Positions 1-15,086 of a DNA stretch of 64,000 bases are shown in pieces. This DNA is from Diplonema japonicum (Eukaryota > Protista > Euglenozoa: Diplonemea). The notes beneath the pieces are model-generated. The model did no database searches. It had not been told where the DNA came from and was given only the letters and a program-made list of their open reading frames with translations. Both the position numbers and the translations under genes were made by a program. The stretch spans positions 1-64,000 of the forward strand of contig OZ025722.1 in NCBI GenBank assembly GCA_964019335.1, given 5' to 3'. Numbering within the stretch: position 1 is the stretch's first letter; every line of letters begins with the position of its first letter.

Positions 1-165
1 GCGGGTTTGCGGGTTTGCGGGTTTGCGGGTTTGCGGGTTTGCGGGTTTGCGGGTTTGCGGGTTTGCGGGTTTGCGGGTTTGCGGGTTTGCGGGTTTGCGG
101 GTTTGCGGGTTTGCGGGTTTGCGGGTTTGCGGGTTTGCGGGTTTGCGGGTTTGCGGGTTTGCGGG
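1..165 (+). repeat. (GCGGGTTT)n 8-mer tandem array, telomere-like, G-rich strand pointing into the window
   Basis: 20 perfect GCGGGTTT units plus GCGGG; runs off the window start; a short recurrence lies at 473-491. Confidence 0.95.
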
Positions 166-420
166 TCATCAAGGAGCATCATCATCGACTCCTCCTCTCC
201 GACTGCATACTCGTAGTGGGTGCCGTTGTACGCCAGCACCACCACCTTCTCGTGGTCGGAGTTGTACTCCCCTATCATCAGGACTGGGTTGTTACCCCCA
301 GCAACCACGAGTATCGTGCGGCCAAACGCTTGTGCTGCGGCTGCCAGGCACAAGTGGTCTCCCCACGTCGCCGCTGTGCCCATCCCTTCCAAGTACCGGC
401 CCCAACCCTCGCTGCAAAAC

Positions 421-422
<2 letters not shown>
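166..422 (-). mobile_element. 257-bp duplicate of an internal (OTU-coding) segment of the adjacent retrotransposon
   Basis: Same orientation as 6525-6781, with 5 substitutions by manual alignment. Confidence 0.92.
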
Positions 423-472
<50 letters not shown>

Positions 473-498
473 CGGGTTTGCGGGTTTGGGGTTTTTTT

Positions 499-623
499 AA
501 AAAGGGGGACTTGAGAAAATAAATAAAAAGGGGGACTTGAGAAAATAAATAAAAAGGGGGACTTGAGAAAATAAATAAAAAGGGGGACTTGAGAAAATAA
601 ATAAAAAGGGGGACTTGAGAATG
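499..623. repeat. 26-bp tandem repeat (AAAAAGGGGGACTTGAGAAAATAAAT), about 4.8 copies
   Basis: Units start at 499, 525, 551, 577 and 603; T-tracts lie at 423-472 (T50), 492-498 (T7) and 624-643 (T20). Confidence 0.9.
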
Positions 624-1306
624 TTTTTTTTTTTTTTTTTTTTCTTCAAAAGACACACAAGGCACGATAAATCTTAAGAGAAAATAAAAATATTCCAAAA
701 CAGACAATCAAGTTCCAACCTGGGAGGAAGGCATGGGTTTCTCTTTTTCTTTATGGGAGGGAGAGGGGAAGAAGAAGAAGCAACTCCAAATGATAAAAAT
801 TCAAAAATAAAAATCTCAAAAAAGGCTTAAAAGAAGAAGAGGCAAATTCAAAAACATACTAGGGAGGAATGAGTGGGGCAGGGGGTAAAATTTAGGAGGG
901 GGAAAGAGGGAGAATCAAAAAAGGGGAAAGGGGCAGAGTGACCAATGTCCATGCGAAAAAGCATAGAGCGGGGGAAGAAGAAAATCAAAAACAGGAAAAA
1001 CACATCACCACACAAGAAAAAAGAAAAAAAAAAAAAAACGTCGACCGAGATGGTTCCACTTCAAAAAGAAAAAGAAAAAGAAAAACAGAAAAATAAAAAA
1101 AAAAAAAAAAAAAGAAAAACAAAAAGAAAAAAAAAAAAAAAGGAAAAAAAAAAAAAATCTAAGTGGTTCTATCTAGCCTGGCCGTTGTAGCACCTGTTCC
1201 TATTCTTTTATTTTTCCCTTTTTTTTTTCTCAGAAAAAAAAAAAAAAAAGTTTCACATCTTCCTATGGCGGGGGGGGGGAGAACAGCCCCCCACACCCCC
1301 GCTGGC

Positions 1307-4300
1307 CTATCTGGCCAGCGAGCCTTTGGACCTCTTCTTGTGGGGTATGGGCCCCACCCGTGCCCTCCCCGACTCGAGCTGCAGCCAAGCCACCGCACTG
1401 TTCACCGGGGCCCAGTTCTCCTTGTTGCGCACCTTGACCGTGTCCCGCACCAGGTCGTCGCTCCCCAGCTCTTCCATCAACCTGTGCTCCGCCAAGAACT
1501 TGAACTGGGGCCCGGTCATCCCCTTGAGCTCACCCCTGCATATGTTGGCTTCGACCACGGTGCCATCCGCCCCCGTACCCTTCAGATAGATGTAGCCACC
1601 CTCCACACAATCCGAGTCAGTACTGGCCGATCGGGCCCGGGCCCGCTTCTTGTCCTTCTTGCTCCACTTCAGCTCTTCCAGGGTGGGGAGGTCCGTGGCA
1701 ACCACCTCAGGCCGCCTCTCCCTGTCTTCCTCCTTCTTCCGGGCCAACAGCCCAAGGTACCTCTCAAAGGAGACGTCCTCGAACAACCCCGGGACCGTCA
1801 CCACCGCTGACTGCAGGTCGACCTCTTCAACACCCATCTTCCGCAGATGGTCCTGGACAGTGCGCCTCGTCTCCTTCTCGCAGGGCCCCCTCCCCTCGTA
1901 GACGTCGAGGGTGACCTTCCTTCCATCCCTCACCCACGCCTTCACTTTGATCAGGTCCTTGACCTTTCCCACTGGGGCCCTTATCCTTGCGTCGCACCTC
2001 TCCAAGAACTCACGTAGTGTCACCTTGGTAGCGCCGGCTCCCGCCGCAATGCCCACTACCCCTTCCTTCCCCGGTGTCGGGTGGTGTCTGCACCCCCGGG
2101 TCTGCAACTTGACCACCCTCCATGCCGTTTCCAGAGTCCCCTTGAGCACGCCACCCTTGAAACGAACAGGTTGCACCGCCGAACACCCACACGCGTACGT
2201 GATCTGGAAATCCTGGACCGTCCTCGGGAACTCGAACTCGCGGTATGTTTCCGACTTCTGCACCTCACAACCCACAATGCGGCTGCGGCGCTCTCCGTCC
2301 GACCCACCTTCCAAGCTTGCGAAGTACTGCTTTACCATCATGTATCCAAGTCCAGCGATACCAATCTGGCCAGCCATAGCCACCTCCAGTGGAACACCCA
2401 GCGACTCGGCCTTCGCAAGAAGCATCTCCTCAGTCCTCTCCCTTCCAGGGTCCGTTCCTTCTTCAAGGATGATCTCCACCCGGCCCTCGAACTGGATGAT
2501 GAACTTGAGCAGTCGGTCCCCCGGCCTCGCCCTCAGTGGCACCATCGCTCTCGGAATTGGGATGCCCATCACCACATCAATCGGGTCAAGCTGAACGAAG
2601 TCTCCCCCTACTTCCACCTGCTGTTCCCTTTCCGGTGCCCCGACTCCCATCAGCTGATCTCCCTCCGGCGTCTGGATCCCACCCCTAGGTGTGTCAGGCC
2701 CCGACTGGCTGCCTCCGCTCGGTGCGTTCCCGCCCTCTTTGGTCCCTTCGGGGGCGTCATCCGCCTGCGGCTTCAGAGTCCTCCCACCGCCCTGTCTCTT
2801 CGCAGCTTGTTCCCTACAGAATTCGCTCACGGTCATCTTCCTCGTAGCAGTTGTCGCACTCTGGTCCCCCTTGTTCGAGTCCCTCTGGGCCTCCGTATCC
2901 CCCTTAGGACACTGGTCCAAGGTCTGGTTCACCGCAGCGTCAGTCGCCCCTTGTCTCTTCCCATCTTCCTGGGCCTTCGGGTCAAGCTCCCCTCCCTGCC
3001 CAGCCCTCTCGCTGGATCCTGTTCCGACCATCTCCGTGTCTTCTCCTCCCGGCGAGGCTGCTTCGAGTCCTGCTCCCGCTTTCCCTTGTGTTCCACCCTC
3101 CACCGGTTCCGCCTTTCGCTGCTGCTGCATTCGGGCGTCCAGGTCCTTCTTCGTCTGCTCCAGAAGGGCATCCAGCTGGTGGGCCACCGTGATTGGGGGT
3201 CCGCCTCCCTGTCCCTTCACTTCCCTCTCGGACGACTCCTCAGCTTCGGTGGTTTTTTCATTGCCGAAGGAGTCCTCTGTGAGGTCAGTGTTGGATTCAG
3301 TGTTGGGTTCGTTGTTCGCTTCCTCGTTGTCCTTTTTTTCCTCTTCGCCGTCCGGTACCGGGGGCCCTGGATCCAACTGTACAGGCCCTTTGACTAACAG
3401 CGCCCCTGCTATCGATCTCATCATGGCCGTTGACACCTCTTGGACCACACGCCTGTGTATCGAGACTCTGTCCCCGTGAGCCCGCGCAGCTATGCTCCTG
3501 GACAGTTTCTTCGTGAGGTAGACTGCTGCCTCCCCGAACCCCCCAAAGGTCTCCATCGCGAAAGGTACAAAGGCCACGCGTGTCTTGGCGAGCTCCGCCT
3601 CATACTTCTGGCGCTTGTAGTGTTCCGCCTTCGCCGCTGCGTATCCCGCAGTCTTCGCCGCCTGGTTGACACAAGACTCGTTCCTCGGGTGCACGATGAC
3701 CACGTCCATAGCCATTGGGCGGGAACCCCCCACCCCACCTGGGAAGAACACGTCCGCCGGGCGCTGGGACGACCCCGGGATCAGCCCCGTCTTCTCCATC
3801 GTTGCGCTCACCCCGGCCCACTGACAGTGTCTGTGGATGGTCTCCTTCACCCGGTCGTGCCTCGCAATCCTGGCGTTGCCGCATCCCTGGGCATGGTCAC
3901 CCCATACGTCCATCCCCTCAGTCTTGCACCTCGGGTCGTGGCAGCTCTCACCCTGCTTGTAGACCGGAGCCCCCAACCACCACTTGATCAGAGCCCCAAA
4001 CTCGTTGTCCGACAGCTGGTTGTAGAAGTCAGGCGTCGCCGTCAACCACGCTCCCGCATAGTGCATTGACTCCGACATCAACCTCGCTCTCGAGCGTGCA
4101 TCTGCTTTCGCCAAGAGGTCCTCCAGCGCCTTCTCATCAAGCACCCTAGAGAGCCACCTCTGGCTGCAGATGTGGGGGGCCTTGGCCACCATGTCGGGTG
4201 TAATCTGCATGCCGCCCTTCGTCCTGTTGAACCACTCGAGCCAGCTCCCCCATACACCCCCTTCCAGCCCATGTTCGTATTTGGGATCCAGCTCCTTGCA

Positions 4301-7300
4301 CAGCTTCATCGTCGACGCCCTCGAAGCCATGTTGGCCGCGCGCAGGTGCTCCTGGCAGCTCCTCATCCCAAGCCCACCGACTTTTACGGACAGTTTCGCC
4401 TGCTGCCATTCTTTCGACCCGTTCTCGAACTGCATGCCGCACACCTTCGACATCGTCTTCCGCACCATCTCGTCGAACCTGTGCATGACCCCTCCCACAT
4501 GCGAGTCTGGGACCACTCTCATGTAAAACACCAGTTTGCTGTATGAGCTGCAATACCGGAGAAGTGTGTACCCTGTCTGCCTCCCCACCTTGGTCAGCAT
4601 GTCGAAGTTCTCTTCCAGCGCGTCCAAGCGTTTGTTCAGAAAGGCTTGCGTGTACTCCGGCGATCCTATCGGCGCCCCCAGGAGCATGAAGTTCCTCTCT
4701 TTGTGGAAATTCTCTTCTGTCAGGCCATCGAAGCCTGTGTCCTCCACTGTCTGGGGGAGGTCGCCACTAACCCATATGAGCTCGCACTTCTGGGGTTTCA
4801 CTTTCAGCCCTATCATTCCGCTCAGCTCACACAAGATGTTGTACGCCTTTCTCACTTCATCCACATTCCCCACAAGGACGCCATCGTCCAGGTAGAACTG
4901 GAGGATGTCCAGGTTGCAGTCTTCACTTATCTTGTTCACCAGGGGTTGGATGGCCAGAGAGAACAGCAGCGGTCCCATCGGGTCCCCCTGTTGCACCCCT
5001 TCCTGGGACTTAATCACCTTTCCGTTGTAGTATAATTGGGAGGGCACCCTGTAGCACCAATCGGCCCACGCATACAGCCCCGACGCTTGCTCATAGGCCT
5101 GTGAGCACAGCTGCCTCCGACAAACACTGTTGAAGGCGTTGGCGTAGTCGATCTTGAGGATCACCTTGTTTTCCTGCTTGTTGCCCCGTTCCCTGTCCAC
5201 ATACTGCCTGATGGTGTGTATAGCCGCCTCCATTCCAGCAGGGACCGATACCCCCACCTGGCCGCCTTTCTTCAGGTACGAAGAGGCCACTTCCGGAGCG
5301 ATCTTCTTCACAAGGGATTTCCCCACCAGCCGACGCAGCACATCCCCAACGGCTATGGGCCGCACGTCCCTGTCGTTCTTCTTGAGGGCCACAAGGTTCG
5401 CCCCTGCCATCAGCGGAGCCACCTCCCTAGGGGCCGTGCCTCTAGCTAATGCGTTGACTGCCCTCGTCACCGACATCAAACAGCCTTGAGACTCAAAAGC
5501 TCCGTCCACCGCGTCCTTGATGTGCTGGGCTCTCAGACCAGTCGGTCCCGCAGCAGTCCCCCTCGGGAAGTCCCTGATTGCGTCCAGCACTTCTTCTGGC
5601 AAGACTTCTACCGCTTCCTTCGTCTTCGCCGGGTTGTCCCATTGGGGGTGTAGTGGCTCTGGATGTTTGCTCTGCAGCGCTCTCCAGCAATCCTCATTGT
5701 CTTCCGCCAGCCCCTGGGCTACAAGCGCCGCGTTTCCTGCCGAGAACCTCCCTTTGCTGCACAGTTCCGTGGCCCTGGCGACCTTAGAGACCTCGTCGTT
5801 CTTAGGTTCCCCCTTCTCACCTGATTCCAGCTTATTCCAGAGGGCCATGTAATTTCCCTTCTCCCACTCCTCCAATCTGGCCTGGACACTCAGCTCCGTC
5901 TCCTTGTCCCGCTTCTTCCCTCCCCTCTTCTTCCACAGGCAGGCTTTGGGGAGCATCGCCACCAGCAGCCAAGCCTCCTCTGTGTTGTCCTTCACCGCCC
6001 GGCCCAGAGTGTGCTTAAGGGTAAGCCCCCACAGTCTTTGAAGGCTCGTCGGGATCGACCCCATGGTCGTGACGTTCATGGCGGCTATGGCTTCCAGGCT
6101 GGGTAACTCGGTCCTCGTCGGGGCCGGCGGGGGGGTCGTGTATTCCCCTTCCCTTCGCACCGCCTTTTTGCACTCGTCGTGGCACCCCTGACCCTTCCAC
6201 ACACAGCCCCTGCACACCAGGCACCTCTCGAGGTCCAGTCTCCTCAGAACGCTCTCCGGGATCTCATCACTCTCCAGGTGCCCATCCAGGTGACACTTCC
6301 ATACCCTTGTCGAGTTGAACGGGGTCGTGCTTTTGCACTTCGACCTAGCGCAGTTCGCCACCGGACAGTACAGGAATTGCTGGTTCCTTGCCCCCATCTG
6401 GTCCAACACCCCTGCCTTCCCGTATCCAGGGATCGCACGGTCTATTATGTCCCACTCCCCGATGTCCTCACCCGGGGCCTCGGAGGGTTGCTTACCTGCC
6501 TTTTGTAGAGCTACCGATTGGGACTCATCAAGGAGCATCATCATCGACTCCTCCTCTCCGACTGCATACTCGTAGTGGTTGCCGTTGTACGCCAGCACCA
6601 CCACCTTCTCGTGGTCGGAGTTGTACTCCCCTATCATCAGGACTGGGTTGTTCCCCCCAGCAACCACGAGTATCGTGCGGCCAAACGCTTGTGCTGCGGC
6701 TGCCAGGCACAAGTGGTCTCCCCACGTCGCTGCTGTGCCCATCCCTTCCAAGTACCGGTCCCAACCCTCACTGCAAAACGGGGCATAGTGCTCCTCCCGG
6801 TGTTTCATCCATTCTACAACCTCGCTCCTGATGTGGGTGTGGTCGCCGTAGGCTTCCCCGAGCGAACCGGCCAGGGCGTGGAACATGCAGTTCCCGTCCT
6901 TCTCCGTCGATCTCCTCGTCAGCTTGAAGCTCTTCATGATCTCGTCCACTGACTTGCCGGCCCTGGGTTGTTTGTCGGGGTTCCACAGATTCCGCTGCCT
7001 GTGTAGTGCACAGTGCGTCTGGTTCGACGAGCACGCCGCAGCACACGTTCCACAGAGGTTCACCTTCATGCTCCTCGCCTGCTCTTGTTTCACAAAATGA
7101 TGGTGGACCGCATTGAGGTGTTTAACTAGACAGCTTGCCACACTGGTGCGGAAAGAGCAGTCTTCCATCCGGCATTGATGTTTGTCTGATCCTTCTTTTT
7201 CCCCCTCCTTCTGCGCCTCCATGTGCTCATCATCCAAATCCATGGGGGGAGGGTCACCACCTCCTTGCAACGCGTCCCCTGCCAGCGTCAAGTCCGCAAA

Positions 7301-8179
7301 GGGGTCCAGGTGTTCGGCCTGAAAGAGCTTATCCTCCGTCTCAGCTCGTTCCTTCGCCGCTTGCTTGGCGTCCTCCTTCTTTTTTCTGCGTCTTGAGCTT
7401 CTAGGCGGGCCCAAGTACACCGGCCGGTAGTGACCTCTCGATCCGCGTCTTGTCTTCTTCAGCTTTACCGGTCCGAATCTCTGGGTCGGGCCAGCACCAG
7501 CTTTCCCCACCATCACTTCCACCATGGCCCAGAGCGACATCAGCCCCCCTATCCAAACTGAAGTGCTTCCCACCAGAGTGCCCCCTACCGCTAGCCAAGC
7601 GAGCTCCCCGGCGGACCATTCATCCCCTCGGGGCCCCACCTGTACCCTTGACCTGTGGGTGGTCCTCCTGTCGCTCCCCGGCCTCTTCCACAACACTGCC
7701 GCATGCAGGAAGGAGGGGGCCATCCCGATGCCCGCCCCCAGCACCTGCCTCACCCCTGGGATCAGCAAGAGGGAGACGGCGACCCAGGCCCACGCCCCCA
7801 GGTGCTCCCATCTCACCCCTTCCTTGCTGTGTCCCGTCCGTCTGCGGTGCCTCCTTGTGCCGGTTGCAGCCCCAGGTGCCGGGATTCTGGGTGCCAGGGG
7901 TTGGGCTCCAGGCGTTCCCACCTCGGTCCGCTTCAGCCCCATTGCAGGGTCATCTGGCTTCTGTTCCAGGGCGGCCTCGTGTTCCTCTCTGCGGGCCCTC
8001 CTCCTCCTCCCTTCTTTCCTCGCACGACGGTGCCTTTTCTTCTCCTGTCTGGCAGCCTCCCTCGCCCCCTCCCTCGCCTTGGTCCTCTTCTCCCGACGCC
8101 TCTGAAGGGCCGTTTCGCTCCTGTGCCTCCTCCTGTTCTTCTTCCGCTTGGGCGCTGGCTTAGGTTCCCTGCCACCCAT
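1307..8179 (-). CDS. Retrotransposon polyprotein: C2H2 zinc fingers, OTU cysteine protease, reverse transcriptase, restriction-like endonuclease, long C-terminal extension
   Basis: Uninterrupted ORF (GTG 8263, first ATG 8179). OTU: DGNCMFHAL...WGDHLCL...NHYE. RT: GPTGLR, RPIAVGD, KIDYANAFNS, GVQQGDPMGP, FYLDD, GGLG. RLE: CHDPRC...HAQGC, RHD, RPAD, MDVVI, KRQKY, PFAMETFGG. Confidence 0.95.
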   Translation of the reverse strand: MGGREPKPAPKRKKNRRRHRSETALQRRREKRTKAREGAREAARQEKKRHRRARKEGRRRRARREEHEAALEQKPDDPAMGLKRTEVGTPGAQPLAPRIPAPGAATGTRRHRRRTGHSKEGVRWEHLGAWAWVAVSLLLIPGVRQVLGAGIGMAPSFLHAAVLWKRPGSDRRTTHRSRVQVGPRGDEWSAGELAWLAVGGTLVGSTSVWIGGLMSLWAMVEVMVGKAGAGPTQRFGPVKLKKTRRGSRGHYRPVYLGPPRSSRRRKKKEDAKQAAKERAETEDKLFQAEHLDPFADLTLAGDALQGGGDPPPMDLDDEHMEAQKEGEKEGSDKHQCRMEDCSFRTSVASCLVKHLNAVHHHFVKQEQARSMKVNLCGTCAAACSSNQTHCALHRQRNLWNPDKQPRAGKSVDEIMKSFKLTRRSTEKDGNCMFHALAGSLGEAYGDHTHIRSEVVEWMKHREEHYAPFCSEGWDRYLEGMGTAATWGDHLCLAAAAQAFGRTILVVAGGNNPVLMIGEYNSDHEKVVVLAYNGNHYEYAVGEEESMMMLLDESQSVALQKAGKQPSEAPGEDIGEWDIIDRAIPGYGKAGVLDQMGARNQQFLYCPVANCARSKCKSTTPFNSTRVWKCHLDGHLESDEIPESVLRRLDLERCLVCRGCVWKGQGCHDECKKAVRREGEYTTPPPAPTRTELPSLEAIAAMNVTTMGSIPTSLQRLWGLTLKHTLGRAVKDNTEEAWLLVAMLPKACLWKKRGGKKRDKETELSVQARLEEWEKGNYMALWNKLESGEKGEPKNDEVSKVARATELCSKGRFSAGNAALVAQGLAEDNEDCWRALQSKHPEPLHPQWDNPAKTKEAVEVLPEEVLDAIRDFPRGTAAGPTGLRAQHIKDAVDGAFESQGCLMSVTRAVNALARGTAPREVAPLMAGANLVALKKNDRDVRPIAVGDVLRRLVGKSLVKKIAPEVASSYLKKGGQVGVSVPAGMEAAIHTIRQYVDRERGNKQENKVILKIDYANAFNSVCRRQLCSQAYEQASGLYAWADWCYRVPSQLYYNGKVIKSQEGVQQGDPMGPLLFSLAIQPLVNKISEDCNLDILQFYLDDGVLVGNVDEVRKAYNILCELSGMIGLKVKPQKCELIWVSGDLPQTVEDTGFDGLTEENFHKERNFMLLGAPIGSPEYTQAFLNKRLDALEENFDMLTKVGRQTGYTLLRYCSSYSKLVFYMRVVPDSHVGGVMHRFDEMVRKTMSKVCGMQFENGSKEWQQAKLSVKVGGLGMRSCQEHLRAANMASRASTMKLCKELDPKYEHGLEGGVWGSWLEWFNRTKGGMQITPDMVAKAPHICSQRWLSRVLDEKALEDLLAKADARSRARLMSESMHYAGAWLTATPDFYNQLSDNEFGALIKWWLGAPVYKQGESCHDPRCKTEGMDVWGDHAQGCGNARIARHDRVKETIHRHCQWAGVSATMEKTGLIPGSSQRPADVFFPGGVGGSRPMAMDVVIVHPRNESCVNQAAKTAGYAAAKAEHYKRQKYEAELAKTRVAFVPFAMETFGGFGEAAVYLTKKLSRSIAARAHGDRVSIHRRVVQEVSTAMMRSIAGALLVKGPVQLDPGPPVPDGEEEKKDNEEANNEPNTESNTDLTEDSFGNEKTTEAEESSEREVKGQGGGPPITVAHQLDALLEQTKKDLDARMQQQRKAEPVEGGTQGKAGAGLEAASPGGEDTEMVGTGSSERAGQGGELDPKAQEDGKRQGATDAAVNQTLDQCPKGDTEAQRDSNKGDQSATTATRKMTVSEFCREQAAKRQGGGRTLKPQADDAPEGTKEGGNAPSGGSQSGPDTPRGGIQTPEGDQLMGVGAPEREQQVEVGGDFVQLDPIDVVMGIPIPRAMVPLRARPGDRLLKFIIQFEGRVEIILEEGTDPGRERTEEMLLAKAESLGVPLEVAMAGQIGIAGLGYMMVKQYFASLEGGSDGERRSRIVGCEVQKSETYREFEFPRTVQDFQITYACGCSAVQPVRFKGGVLKGTLETAWRVVKLQTRGCRHHPTPGKEGVVGIAAGAGATKVTLREFLERCDARIRAPVGKVKDLIKVKAWVRDGRKVTLDVYEGRGPCEKETRRTVQDHLRKMGVEEVDLQSAVVTVPGLFEDVSFERYLGLLARKKEEDRERRPEVVATDLPTLEELKWSKKDKKRARARSASTDSDCVEGGYIYLKGTGADGTVVEANICRGELKGMTGPQFKFLAEHRLMEELGSDDLVRDTVKVRNKENWAPVNSAVAWLQLESGRARVGPIPHKKRSKGSLAR

Positions 8180-8399
8180 GGCAATCCAGGGGGCTCTTTT
8201 CTGTCTTCTCACAAGGGTGTGCAGTGGTGCTCTCACGTCGCCCGCAGCCTCCGCCCCAACCACACCTTGGCGGGCGGTGGGGGTGGGTGCTGGGTCCCCC
8301 TGGTTGTTTGAAAAGAAAAAAGGTTCCTCCTTGTTTGTTTTTTTTTTTTTCTTTCCCTTCCACCCTCAAAAAAAGCCCCCGGCCCTTGGGGACCAGGGT

Positions 8400-8870
8400 G
8401 TACACCTCCGTAGAGGGTCCAGAAAAAATGGGGGGCAGAGAGGGAGGGGCACTACCTTCTCTCGGGTGTGCTGTCTCTCCCTCTGCCTTTTTTTCCTCCG
8501 AAGAGGGTCTGTTTTTCACCTCCGTGGAGGGTCCCTCTGGAGAGGGCTCTATAAAAGAAAAAGGGGGGGACGAATGGGGGGGAGGAACACTACCCTCTCT
8601 CGGGAGTGCCACCTCTTCCCCTCTCTCTCTGTTTTCCTCCGAAGAGGGTCTGTTTTTTACCTCCGTGGAGGGTTCCTCTGGAGAGGGCTCTAAAAATGAA
8701 AAAGGGGGGGACAAATGGGGGGGAGGAGCACCACCCTCTCTCGGGAGTGCCACCTCTTCCCCTTTCTCTCTATTTTCCTCCGAAGAGGGTCTGTTTTCCT
8801 CCGAAGAGGGTTCTAAAAAAAAAAAGGGGGCGGGTGGGGCACTATCCTCTCTTGGGAGTGCCACCCCCCC
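8400..8870. repeat. 141-bp imperfect tandem repeats (about 3 copies) inside the retroelement 5' region
   Basis: CCTCCGAAGAGGGTCTG recurs at 8495, 8636 and 8777; an open frame 8160-9026(-) translates the 47-aa unit. Confidence 0.85.
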
Positions 8871-8890
8871 TTGCCCACAAAAAAGGGGAT

Positions 8891-9868
8891 CTAAAAAAGG
8901 GGGTTCGTTGTTAACCCAGGGGATGGGTCTTCCTGGGGTGTGCGGGTGAGCTTGGGGCCTACCGCACGCAGGGTGATCGACACCCTGACACCAGTGGACA
9001 TCCCGGACGGGATGTGGTGCGTCCACTGGTGTCTCGCTTCACCTTCCAACAGTGCCCATGAGAAGGGGGGCACCAGGTATCTCGCCACCCTGTCCCCCCT
9101 CCTCATGACCATTGTGGTCTCGGCTCCGTACGAGAGGACTAGGACAATCGGTCCCAGCCTCGCGTCGTCCTTGTGGGCGGCAATCCCACAACCAGACTTG
9201 TACTTGTTGACAAGTACCTGGTTGGGGACCACCTTGAGTCCTGCGGCGGCGGCCACCTCCCTCACCCACCCCTCCGCCCCCCCTGGGATCCCCGTGGTGG
9301 GGCGCACCTTGGCGTTCGTCCCCTCCCACCGGTACCCGTATTGGAGGGTCTCCCTCCCTGAGTTCCCAGACAGGGCCTCCCACTTTCCTGAAAGCAGGGC
9401 TTTCGGGAAGGCAGGGGCAGGGCCCGTCCTCAACCCGGGAGGGTGTTCACCATACACCAGTACCCACCCCTTTTTTTCTCCCTCTTTTCTTCCCTCTTCA
9501 ACAATAGCAGGGTCGGCTGCAGGGGTCGTGGTCGCGGCGGTCGTGGCTGCGGCAGGGGCGGCTGCGGCGGTCTCAGTTGCGGCGATCAGGGCGGCAGGGT
9601 CGGCTGCGGCGTTCAGGGCGGCTGGGGCGGCCGTGGCTGTAGCAGCGGCGGTCAAAACCGCGGTCTCTGCTAGTGATTTTTTTATTTTATTTTTTTTTTC
9701 TAAAGGGGGGTGGGGGGATCTAGGGGGTGGGGGTGGGGATTCATACTGCCCAACCAGATAGTCTGGTTGGGTCGGCCCTGGCGTCGTGTGCAGCCTGGCG
9801 GCCTGTCGGGGTTCCTTCTCCCTGCGGTTTGCGCGGTCACCTCCTCTTGCGTTCCGTCTTGGATCCAT
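8891..9868 (-). CDS. AlkB-family 2OG-Fe(II) dioxygenase with Pro/Ala-rich N-terminus (ORF1 of the retroelement)
   Basis: RETLQYGYRW; PNQVLVNKYKSGCGIAAHKD (NxY..HxD); LSYGAETTM; LLEGEARHQWTHHIP (distal His); RVSITLR (RxxxxxR). Confidence 0.88.
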   Translation of the reverse strand: MDPRRNARGGDRANRREKEPRQAARLHTTPGPTQPDYLVGQYESPPPPPRSPHPPLEKKNKIKKSLAETAVLTAAATATAAPAALNAAADPAALIAATETAAAAPAAATTAATTTPAADPAIVEEGRKEGEKKGWVLVYGEHPPGLRTGPAPAFPKALLSGKWEALSGNSGRETLQYGYRWEGTNAKVRPTTGIPGGAEGWVREVAAAAGLKVVPNQVLVNKYKSGCGIAAHKDDARLGPIVLVLSYGAETTMVMRRGDRVARYLVPPFSWALLEGEARHQWTHHIPSGMSTGVRVSITLRAVGPKLTRTPQEDPSPGLTTNPLF

Positions 9869-10040
9869 TTTTTATTTTTTTTATTTTTTTTTAAAGTGTG
9901 TGTTGGGGGAGGGGATCCTTTCGGTAAGCGGCGGGCAGGCCGACGGGCAAAACAACCCCCCCGGACGACGGCGACGACGGACGACGGACGCAGCAGCAAA
10001 CCCAGGCAGAGGCGGCAGGCACCAGCAGAACACGAACGAC

Positions 10041-10079
10041 CAATAAAGTACAGAAACTGTAGCTTTAGAATCGTTGGTT
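10041..10079 (-). ncRNA. Spliced-leader (mini-exon) sequence, exon only, ectopic copy
   Basis: AACCAACGATTCTAAAGCTACAGTTTCTGTACTTTATTG, 39 nt, with the euglenozoan SL core CAGTTTCTGTACTTTATTG and diplonemid-type AACCAACG start; followed by GT. Confidence 0.9.
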
Positions 10080-10263
10080 TTTTTTATTTTTTCATTTTCT
10101 TGTTAAGTTAGGGCAGCATTTAGTAGGGTTTGCAGGATATTTTTCATATTTTCCGCGCAGGACCCCGCCGGCAAGAAAGGGCCGGGCCGTATTGCATTGA
10201 AAGCCCTTTGCGTAAAAGATTTTTTTTCAAATCGTCTATATATAGACGCTCGTTGATAGATGG
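10080..10263 (-). mobile_element. Truncated left end of a piggyBac element
   Basis: Reverse complement of 13285-13461, with TIR CCATCTATCAACG and TTAA at 10264-10267. Confidence 0.9.
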
Positions 10264-10335
10264 TTAAAAATATTTTAATTAAAACTAAGGTACAAGGTAT
10301 AAAATAAAGGTATAGAAAATATAGTAAAGGAAAAT

Positions 10336-10526
10336 GGAAAAGGAAAAGGAAAAGGAAAAGGAAAAGGAAAAGGAAAAGGAAAAGGAAAAGGAAAAGGAAA
10401 AGGAAAAGGAAAAGGAAAAGGAAAAGGAAAAGGAAAAGGAAAAGGAAAAGGAAAAGGAAAAGGAAAAGGAAAAGGAAAAGGAAAAGGAAAAGGAAAAGGA
10501 AAAGGAAAAGGAAAAGGAAAAGGAAA
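10336..10526. repeat. (GGAAAA)n polypurine microsatellite, about 32 copies
   Basis: Perfect hexamer run. Confidence 0.95.
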
Positions 10527-13284: not shown

Positions 13285-15086
13285 CCATCTATCAACGAGC
13301 GTCTATATATAGACGATTTGAAAAAAAATCTTTTACGCAAAGGGCTTTCAATGCAATACGGCCCGGCCCTTTCTTGCCGGCGGGGTCCTGCGCGGAAAAT
13401 ATGAAAAATATAAACTAAATGCTGCCCTAACTTAACAAGAAAATGAAAAAATAAAAAAAAACGCCAGCCCAAATTTACCCTTAAAAATCACTTCAAAAAA
13501 AGGCGCCCGGAAAGAGGCCGGAAGAGGACGTTATGAGTGATGGCAGCACTGATGGCTCATCCCTATTATGCAATTTTGATACAAACAGTGATTCTGACAC
13601 GAATTCGACCGATTCCGAGTCACAGCAGGGTGATTGGACGGCAAAGCCGGAGCAGTTGGAAGGCATCCGGTTTCGTGAAGATCGGAATCCTTGTGGACCT
13701 TGTTTTGACATCAGAGGCTCAACGCCATTCCATATATTCTCCCAAATGCTCGTCCAAACTTTATTCGGGTCATAACTTCGAACAATGTGGCAAATGCGGC
13801 TAAAAAAGGTGTCTCCCTGGATCTCGATGCTGCTTCTCTGCGTACCTTCCTAAGTATCCTTTTGTCGATGGACTTGGATATCAAGCCAGATTATTCTGAT
13901 TACTGGTGCACTGGCTCCACGTTTCTCAACTACACCTGGGTACGCTACCGTCATGTCAAGAGACCGCTTTTTGACTATTCTGGGAAATCTGTGTTTCCAC
14001 AGCGAAACAAACAAGCGTGCTGACTTCTACCTATCGCGAAGGCCTCCCGGAGATCATGGATGCCCCAAAGAAGCGAGGCCGCAAGCCCAAGGACGCGCAT
14101 CCCGTGGGGACACAGTTCCACCAGCACGCGAGCATCCTTTGCACCACAACGTGGCATGACATCAAGCCTGTGTGCTTTCTATCGACGTTGGATGTTCCAG
14201 TGAAGTCAAATTTGACCGTCCGCCAAAAGAGAATGAAAGCCGGAAAGGACATCTTGTTCCCCACCAAGTGCATATTTACAACACCGCAATGGGCGGAACC
14301 GACCTGGGTGATGCTGTGACAAAACGCCATAAACGCTCCCTTATGACTTAAAAGTGGCCCCTAAAAGTATTTTCGTACTTGTTAGGTAAATCTCTGGCGA
14401 ATGCTTGGCTTGTTTGGAAAGAAGCCTTGCCCCCCAACACCCTGAGTACGAACGACAGTGTATTGACGCCTTTCAAAGAGGCAGTCATCGAAGAGCTACT
14501 AGGGAGGCAGTCTAAACAACAGATAAAGTCAACTACAGAGCAGGCTGCCCCAATACCATGCCCCGAAACACAGAACGAGTGCTCTGAGACCCCAATGCGC
14601 CGTGACAGTACCTTCTGGGACCATTTCCCCGAAAAAGTAGTGCAACGTGCGGTGCAAGCATTTCAAGTCGAAAAGACCCCTATTTCAGTGTTCAGCCTGC
14701 TTGGTACAACTTTGCGTGACTCCGTGCTTCAAAGACTGCCACCTTGCCGGGGATACCCCCCAGAAACCCCTCTCGGGGTCAAAAAAGAAGTCCCCCAGCC
14801 CTGGGGCACGTACGAACCGCGACAAGAAGGCCTTAAATAGCTTTTTATAGAATTTTACAGTCGATTTTTTTTGACTTGTTTTTTGTACCCCCTCTCGAGC
14901 ACTTCAGGAACGATATTTTTGACAATGTTGTGGGGGTGGGCCCTGCTGTGGGCACCCTCTCTCTAGAATTGGGACATCTGGAGGCATTTTCGGGGGCATA
15001 TAGCCCCGGCGTTGCGCTAGAATAGCTTTTTTTGAAGTTTTGAAAATTTACCCCCTGGTGGGCAAAAATGGTCCGTTGGTAGATGG
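13285..15086 (+). mobile_element. piggyBac DNA transposon, internally deleted
   Basis: TTAA at 13281-13284 and 15087-15090; TIRs CCATCTATCAACG / CGTTGGTAGATGG (12/13 match). Confidence 0.92.
13533..14850 (+). pseudogene. Frameshifted piggyBac transposase
   Basis: Motifs spread over frames: PDYSDYW, MSRDRFLTILGNLCF, WHDIKPVCFLST, YNTAMGGTDLGD, KWPLKVF...NAW, C-terminal CSACLVQLCVTPCFKDCH. Confidence 0.88.

Follow-up and report, generated by a model that had tools for sequence, protein, structure and literature searches.

We examined a 64,000-nt stretch of the Diplonema japonicum genome (assembly GCA_964019335.1, contig OZ025722.1, positions 1–64,000 of the forward strand; hereafter 'the window'), in which the minus strand near the left end carries a copy of a retrotransposon of ~10 kb. 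The open reading frame (ORF) at the 5′ end of this copy encodes an AlkB-family Fe(II)/2-oxoglutarate (2OG) dioxygenase domain. Our analysis indicates that this domain is the N-terminal part of a giant polyprotein in which AlkB is followed by a ~700-aa linker, an OTU domain, a reverse transcriptase (RT) and a restriction enzyme-like (REL) endonuclease. That the polyprotein carries a functional, selected AlkB domain belonging to the element itself appears highly probable. For the fuller statement, in which the AlkB domain of this giant polyprotein, from a retrotransposon without long terminal repeats (non-LTR), acts in cis to demethylate the element RNA, we judge the chances to be about even.

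AlkB is the N-terminal domain of a single polyprotein

A first-pass annotation made from the letters of the window had described an element-borne AlkB at 8891–9868, the span of a separate 325-aa ORF. The domain is indeed borne by the element, as the N-terminal domain of the retrotransposon polyprotein in intact copies, and the separate ORF is a boundary artefact of a one-base deletion. In seven other copies in the genome (62.5 Mb in 132 contigs), a single open frame of 2,700–3,005 aa covers AlkB, OTU and RT, with MDPRR at its start as in the window copy. An intact single ORF of 2,826–3,005 aa with these three domains is found in three lineages of the element: lineage A, the family to which the window copy belongs; lineage B, with ~67% AlkB identity, which includes a 10,659-bp tandem array on contig C24; and lineage C, with ~53% AlkB identity. 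A stand-alone 325-aa ORF1 was rejected, since intact copies read one frame and the stop at 8891 results from a deletion private to the window copy.

The deletion lies near position 8908, where the window copy reads AACA-ACGAA, one base short of the AACAGACGAA present elsewhere. The undeleted form occurs in 26 of the 27 other copies in which the stretch can be located, the remaining copy (L019) being rearranged there, and in contigs of three other public sequencing runs (X6, X7 and X3). The window copy is therefore dead and frameshifted; in its native arrangement, AlkB forms the polyprotein's N-terminal domain. The AlkB frame is also that of the downstream ORF2 (2,318 aa); the two are separated by 186 out-of-frame codons with six stops after the one at 8891. 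The frame is restored by an extra base in a homopolymer near 8350, and one additional 141-bp linker repeat unit in the window copy is frame-neutral.

Catalytic residues and predicted fold

The HxD...H iron triad and the NxY and RxxxxxR motifs, which had been read as intact at the outset, are all located at 8966–9208. In an alignment of the element AlkB with the closest relatives found (68 sequences) the motifs fall on invariant columns (Y84, H93, D95, R140, H145, R156 and S158) or on the near-invariant N82 and R162 columns, which are kept in at least 90% of the sequences. Pfam family PF13532 (2OG-FeII_Oxy_2; cut-off 31.2 bits) matches residues 168–301 of the 325-aa ORF with an E value of 2.2e-14 and 54.6 bits, and matches above the cut-off are also found in lineages B and C and in the related species D. 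papillatum. An AlphaFold2 model built on the 68-sequence alignment has a mean predicted local distance difference test score (pLDDT) of 93.1. The top 50 Foldseek matches to this model are all AlkB-family chains with template modeling (TM) scores of 0.6–0.77, which fits a double-stranded β-helix with the AlkB-type N-terminal hairpin. None of the residues that bind metal or 2OG is missing, and the domain is confidently predicted to fold as an AlkB.

The structural matches begin with ALKBH6, NMAD-1 (which we take to be ALKBH4-like), ALKBH8 and Ofd2, followed by ALKBH2, ALKBH3, ALKBH5 and Escherichia coli AlkB. In sequence, the solved structure nearest to the element AlkB is that of human ALKBH8 (oxygenase domain), with an E value of 2e-9. 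Human ALKBH8 (3thp) and ALKBH6 (7vjs), the best sequence matches (2e-9 with a single sequence, 2e-47 with a profile), have in common with the element AlkB the RxxQxYGY hairpin and the HxD...WTH...RxSxTxR motifs. Overall identity is ~25%, however, and the element domain lacks the RNA recognition motif (RRM), the methyltransferase domain and the C-terminal extension, with a divergent segment in place of the N-terminal strand and helix of the relatives. Pfam searches of the polyproteins return AlkB, OTU and RVT_1 only, with no ALKBH8-type RRM upstream or S-adenosylmethionine-dependent methyltransferase downstream. Among viral structures, the model matches giant-virus oxygenases and the AlkB domains of picorna-like and flexivirus polyproteins best.

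Conservation of the domain

Between lineages A, B and C, the AlkB domain shows ratios of nonsynonymous to synonymous substitution (dN/dS, Nei–Gojobori) of 0.23–0.38, at amino-acid identities of 71, 55 and 50%; because dS is near saturation, these ratios and those that follow are rough, while their ranking is clear. The corresponding values are 0.16–0.21 for RT (58–62% identity) and 0.31–0.47 for OTU (35–42% identity). The linker between AlkB and OTU is ~30% identical, and its dS is saturated, so that dN/dS is not reliable there. AlkB is thus conserved at about the level of RT and is the best-conserved part of the polyprotein after it. In 25 of 30 family-A copies every motif is kept and the core contains no stop codon. 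Neutral evolution and frequent disruption, either of which the first-pass annotation would have taken as contrary to its proposal, are not seen; the pattern is that of purifying selection in the three lineages and in the second Diplonema species. Selected and about as conserved as RT, the AlkB domain is therefore a working part of the element and not a passenger.

Some family-A copies carry a B-type N-terminus. Comparison of the first ~100 codons of copies L035 and L036 with those of L037 and the window copy reveals two types of N-terminal segment in family A, one of them identical to that of family B. This 5′ chimerism suggests template switching or recombination between lineages.

Layout of the window copy

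The features of the window copy and its surroundings are collected in Table 1. The 3′ untranslated region (UTR) ends in a short telomere-like tail, CCCCAAACCCGCAAACCCG (473–491), followed by poly(A)50 (423–472). A fragment of a second copy follows directly: its truncated 5′ side abuts the first copy's poly(A), and its 3′ side is cut by the chromosome end and capped directly by the end repeat, an arrangement that looks as after terminal erosion and subsequent healing. On the other side of the element, a perfect (AAAGGA)33 microsatellite (10326–10526) lies between it and the next host gene. A unit of ~130 bp just upstream of the element's spliced leader (10100–10265, minus strand) recurs inverted 3 kb away (13290–13418, plus strand); its artefactual translation reads ...LTIYQRASIYRRFEKKSFTQRAFNAIRPGPFLPAGSCAENMKNI.

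Table 1. Features of the element copy and the adjoining chromosome end, in window coordinates (ORF residue numbers refer to the 325-aa ORF unless stated otherwise)
Feature	Position	Strand	Residues or evidence
Chromosome-end repeat (GCGGGTTT)n, plus-strand reading	1–166	.	
Second-copy fragment, 256 bp of OTU region	167–422	-	
3′ UTR, with 26-bp repeats at 498–621	423–1306	-	
Rest of polyprotein (ORF2), in AlkB frame	1307–8263	-	
CCHC/RHD/E/RPAD/D REL-endonuclease motif	3704–3943	-	ORF2 residues 1441–1520
RT domain (RVT_1)	4772–5383	-	Pfam, E 2e-16
OTU domain	6581–6898	-	Pfam, E 4e-12
Out-of-frame linker, with 141-bp tandem repeats at 8442–8797	8264–8890	-	
325-aa ORF: variable Ala/Thr-rich N-terminus and AlkB domain, ended by stop from private 1-nt deletion	8891–9868	-	
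Site of private 1-nt deletion (~8908), severing AlkB from rest of polyprotein	8899–8917	-	
AlkB-family Fe(II)/2OG dioxygenase core	8957–9469	-	Pfam, alignment, AlphaFold2 model, structure matches
RVSITLR motif (RxxxxxR; R295, R301)	8966–8986	-	Residues 295–301
WTHH motif (distal H, H284/285)	9014–9025	-	Residues 282–285
HKD motif (HxD)	9167–9175	-	Residues 232–234
NKY motif	9200–9208	-	Residues 221–223
5′ UTR, 172 nt; ATG at 9868	9869–10040	-	
Diplonemid spliced leader, 39 nt, AACCAACGATTCTAAAGCTACAGTTTCTGTACTTTATTG, at 5′ end of element copy	10041–10079	-	

Homologues in D. papillatum and origin of the AlkB domain

Proteins of D. papillatum show the same order of AlkB, OTU and RT, with ~39% identity in AlkB. 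The acquisition of AlkB is old and common to the two Diplonema species. KAJ9442719.1 of D. papillatum (2,635 aa) bears the NCBI name 'SLACS 132 kDa protein'. Two further entries of this species, KAJ9446222.1 and KAJ9439924.1, are fragments of retrotransposon polyproteins annotated as 'tRNA (carboxymethyluridine(34)-5-O)-methyltransferase', a mis-annotation that arises because the AlkB domain is ALKBH8-like. The paper on the D. papillatum genome gives the number of AlkB-type genes as 'a dozen' and counts SLACS-like RTs separately. Database entries that name these polyproteins as a tRNA methyltransferase, or count them as host AlkB genes, are misleading.

The D. japonicum genome contains at least 12 interior AlkB-type genes, of which the six nearest to the element domain are 25–33% identical to it. 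Four of these six were compared with solved structures, and all are of the ALKBH8/ALKBH6 type; the paralogue at C22:82k (617 aa) matches ALKBH8 with an E value of 1e-27, far better than the element domain does. In a maximum-likelihood tree of 114 rows, element AlkBs from the two Diplonema species group together in a clade (Shimodaira–Hasegawa-like approximate likelihood ratio test (SH-aLRT) support 84; subclades 96 and 98), and five host paralogues form a separate clade (SH-aLRT 95); the tree backbone is unresolved. Recent capture of a host ALKBH gene was rejected, given an identity of at most 33% to any host paralogue and the separate clade. Orthology and synteny with a host gene, which the initial annotation had raised as a further objection, are accordingly not seen. 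A tree uniting the element and host groups is not rejected by the approximately unbiased (AU) test on a 39-row subset (p 0.39), and an ancient origin from a host ALKBH8/6-like expansion is compatible with these data.

The same test lends something to the idea that the domain is an inert passenger, a captured fragment of a host gene without function, inasmuch as it does not reject a common clade with the host ALKBH8/6-like paralogues and non-LTR elements can transduce host sequence. The dN/dS ratios, the rank of AlkB directly after RT in conservation, the catalytic residues kept in three lineages and in D. papillatum, and the low identity to every host paralogue all argue against it and make it extremely improbable.

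Relatives outside Diplonema were sought by exhaustive search of 1.8 billion protein representatives; a word-indexed protein search gave a single weak match. The nearest are metagenomic AlkB-like proteins of ~180 aa with 33–40% identity. The same AlkB radiation includes two longer metagenomic proteins, P0111 (646 aa), fused to an mRNA cap guanine-N7 methyltransferase, and P0104 (858 aa), fused to an FtsJ-type 2′-O-methyltransferase.

A CRE-like element at chromosome ends

The best solved relatives of the RT region are R2 proteins. The REL-endonuclease motif of Table 1, recognized from a published consensus (PMC12857005), also occurs, at slightly differing spacing, in lineages B and C, and reads RPAD or KPAD for the consensus R/KPD. 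The genome yielded more than 130 matches for AlkB and 81 scored ones for RT, almost all within ~10 kb of contig ends. Minus-strand copies occur at left ends and plus-strand copies at right ends, so that they read 5′→3′ outwards, to the end of the contig. These ends bear (GCGGGTTT)n, and the copies are located in or adjoining the repeats. Judged from the motif, the ORF layout and the NCBI names, the element is probably a CRE-like, REL-type non-LTR retrotransposon residing at most chromosome ends. A literature search found no paper on a euglenozoan, non-LTR or telomeric retrotransposon with AlkB or OTU, and the genome note on D. japonicum YPF1604 (PMC13598402; 62.3 Mb) contains nothing on telomeres, retrotransposons or AlkB.

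The end repeat has a fixed orientation of its own throughout the genome, (GCGGGTTT)n being the plus-strand reading at left ends and the minus-strand reading at right ends. It is the C-rich strand, (AAACCCGC)n, that runs 5′→3′ to the terminus, the reverse of canonical telomeres.

Five copies at five chromosome ends are identical over 2.4 kb, and ~30 RT regions are 99–100% identical; the family therefore appears to have spread or been homogenized very recently, by recent transposition or subtelomeric gene conversion. Six copies (L025–L030, at the ends of C105, C9, C16, C80, C92 and C69) are identical or at most one base apart over ~2.4 kb. A further tandem array, at C99:344897–358618, consists of RT-containing units with a spacing of 6,021 bp and open frames of 1,800 aa; it is probably a 5′-truncated, AlkB-less unit amplified in tandem.

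Spliced leader and cDNA ends

The spliced leader (SL) at the 5′ end of the window copy has the same sequence as the SL RNA gene exons on C4, C51 and C15. The promoter of these genes is conserved and their exon reads AACCAACG...TTATTG, with a GTACCC intron; a locus on C59 is a pattern match only. The three true genes (L052 on C4, L054 on C51 and L057 on C15) share an upstream block, CTAAGCCTTATCTGGGTTTGGAGAAAGAGG...GGTT. The distance between the SL and the ATG, initially put at ~170 nt, measures 172 nt (SL at 10041–10079, ATG at 9868). The host SL stands at the head of the element's DNA copies, so the template is a trans-spliced mRNA. Among copies, the SL is joined to the element 5′ UTR at no fewer than six different points, as fits alternative trans-splice acceptors. 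Insertion into an SL RNA gene was rejected, because the full SL is followed by the element 5′ UTR without the SL intron and the upstream flanks consist of telomere repeats or element fragments. A literature search on the SL sequence returned trypanosomatid papers only.

In runs X6 and X7 the SL is covered at a depth 37- to 1000-fold above neighboring sequence, and contigs cover the AlkB region to at least 99%. This pattern is suggestive of RNA libraries, and so of element transcription; the run type is not on record. Joints of the SL to ~8354 in X7 were rejected as a spliced form of the element, as they have 21–25 matching letters on a T-rich tract and are taken as unrelated SL-carrying mRNAs.

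One explanation for the AlkB domain, put forward in the first-pass annotation, is that it strips base methyls from the first SL nucleotides so that RT reaches position +1. The SL stands on every copy, and the fusions of P0111 and P0104 to N7- and 2′-O-methyltransferases in the same AlkB radiation are in keeping with a cap-related substrate. The proposal drew on the trypanosomatid cap-4, which carries 3-methyluridine (m3U) at +4. A trypanosomatid host was rejected, the organism being a diplonemid, and its SL starts AACC, not AACU; with no U at +4, the trypanosomatid m3U has no counterpart and the premise is inapplicable as stated.

The cDNA ends point the same way. Of the 35 distinct junctions headed by the SL, +2 is the start in 14 and +3 in five. 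Another 12 apparently start at +1; nine of them come after an A-run or a telomere unit whose last base is A and are uninformative, leaving three that are unambiguous. The window copy, from which a cDNA reaching +1 had been read, is among these nine, with an A-run upstream. The last four junctions start at +5 to +13 and comprise one truncation, one rearranged copy and two with point changes in the SL. Three unspliced SL RNA retrocopies also start at +2. This leaves two readings, that the second A is the true +1 or that RT usually halts one base early; neither needs nor suggests demethylation of the cap, and we regard SL-directed erasure as very unlikely.

Loci L051 (C2:150300–150900), L053 (C30) and L056 (C107), which look like such SL RNA retrocopies, consist of the exon and ~105 nt of intron, lack the gene promoter, are preceded by T-runs and begin at SL +2.

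DNA methylation

The AlkB domain could instead act on DNA, demethylating the telomeric target or the new cDNA (N6-methyladenine, 3-methylcytosine, 1-methyladenine or oxidized 5-methylcytosine (5mC)), and thereby aid integration or counter host methylation, as the CpG decay in the window had led the first-pass annotation to consider. NMAD-1, a DNA N6-methyladenine demethylase, ranks among the top matches by structure and by profile; the host has four to five C5-DNA-methyltransferase homologues (C74:154656, C10:360309, C36:98772, C11:562567 and C108:75311); and the telomere unit holds a CpG. The element copies themselves, however, are not protected. L021 (C118:6223–10194), an old copy, has 0.208 transitions per CpG site versus 0.024 elsewhere, a 9-fold excess, and L022 (C97:362111–366061), likewise old, has 0.102 versus 0.017, a 6-fold excess. 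In view of these CpG-biased transitions, the element is not shielded from cytosine methylation, and protection against DNA methylation by AlkB is unlikely. Pfam searches of the polyproteins reveal no DNA-binding module beside AlkB and, to our knowledge, AlkB-family enzymes have not been established as 5mC erasers in vivo. Taken together, we consider a DNA-directed role quite improbable.

Proposed role of the AlkB domain

The reading that we prefer places the substrate on RNA. As part of the same polypeptide as RT, AlkB would act in cis inside the element ribonucleoprotein on single-stranded nucleic acid. It would remove base methyls, either lesions of the 1-methyladenosine (m1A) or 3-methylcytidine (m3C) type or a regulatory mark, from the 10-kb RNA template. 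The outcome would be full-length cDNA, or escape of the RNA from a methyl-dependent host response. Template cleaning for reverse transcription is our best guess, by analogy; a role on the RNA template would parallel that of the AlkB domains in flexivirus replicases and orchid Gypsy elements.

Several observations weigh against RNA demethylation in cis. By sequence and fold, the domain groups with ALKBH8, ALKBH6, NMAD-1 and Ofd2, and not with the repair enzymes AlkB, ALKBH2 and ALKBH3 of the m1A/m3C branch, nor with ALKBH5. ALKBH8 hydroxylates a tRNA wobble base and does not demethylate. With the nearest characterized relatives (ALKBH8, ALKBH6 and NMAD-1) not being classical repair enzymes, hydroxylation instead of demethylation is possible. 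The SL junctions give no indication of cap-proximal clearing. Similarity between the A and B lineages in AlkB derives in part from recombination at the 5′ end, N-terminal segments being shared between the families and dS lower there. Finally, MT-A70, the METTL3-type writer of N6-methyladenosine (m6A), was not found in the genome, a weak negative in that the search controls were uninformative.

The company of ALKBH8-like enzymes also bears on a different possibility, that AlkB works together with the OTU deubiquitinase as a host-directed, counter-defence effector, hydroxylating or demethylating tRNA or protein of the host in the manner of ALKBH8, ALKBH4 and Ofd2, so as to favor translation of the giant ORF or blunt restriction. 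Its closest solved relatives are ALKBH8, which acts on tRNA, ALKBH6, NMAD-1 and Ofd2, and AlkB and OTU recur together in flexivirus replicases (PMC544882). The element nevertheless has neither the RRM nor the methyltransferase domain on which the tRNA work of ALKBH8 depends, and a protein substrate is without support; we think such an effector unlikely.

Returning to RNA demethylation in cis, a more encompassing proposal is that a telomere-targeting diplonemid lineage has carried, since before the two Diplonema species split, an RT-fused oxygenase and OTU as a flexivirus-like module that clears RT-blocking or silencing marks in cis. We put this forward tentatively, as the less probable side of the balance.

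Comparison with known systems

Among non-LTR retrotransposons, the element most closely recalls SLACS, CZAR, CRE1/2 and MoTeR/FoTeR (PMC12857005), which likewise have a single ORF in which RT is followed by CCHC and an RHD...E...R(P)AD...D/E REL endonuclease. Insertion into telomere repeats resembles that of MoTeR/FoTeR, with one fixed orientation and the sense strand collinear with the C-rich strand. No CRE-clade or MoTeR/FoTeR element has been reported with AlkB or OTU, however, and the FoTeR paper (PMC12857005) has no mention of either. SLACS, CRE and CZAR insert inside SL RNA genes, whereas the diplonemid element carries the full SL as its own 5′ end and resides at chromosome ends.

AlkB was previously known in RNA-virus replicases and in one lineage of orchid LTR retrotransposons. 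In the giant Ty3/Gypsy elements of Phalaenopsis, an AlkB ORF (2-oxoglutarate-dependent dioxygenase, 2-ODD) encodes m6A demethylase activity in vitro (PMC9289625). There, too, AlkB is fixed in a retrotransposon lineage, and its proposed target is the RNA of the element itself, in opposition to epitranscriptomic control by the host, as we propose here. The orchid elements differ in being LTR retrotransposons with a separate extra ORF, a recent capture of a plant gene of the m6A demethylase type with activity demonstrated in vitro, whereas the diplonemid element is of the non-LTR REL type, with an N-terminal fusion in a single polyprotein and an old acquisition.

The closest parallel in architecture is found in the Flexiviridae and Closteroviridae, where AlkB lies in the polymerase polyprotein, often just upstream of an OTU-like protease (Bratlie & Drablos 2005, PMC544882). 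Flexivirus replicases have the same order of AlkB, OTU and polymerase with conserved catalytic motifs, and the element model matches them structurally. The polymerase is an RNA-dependent RNA polymerase of a plant RNA virus in one case and the RT of a genomic non-LTR retrotransposon of a protist in the other. The element AlkB groups by sequence with ALKBH8/6-like proteins, and a specific ancestry in common with the viral domains did not emerge. If our reading is correct, this would be the first case of a non-LTR element that carries an RNA/DNA demethylase of its own, and it would be evidence that methyl-base marks are a general host weapon against RNA-templated replicators. The age of the domain, its RT-like conservation and the pairing of AlkB and OTU in flexivirus order suggest that unrelated RNA-templated replicators have put together the same accessory module convergently.

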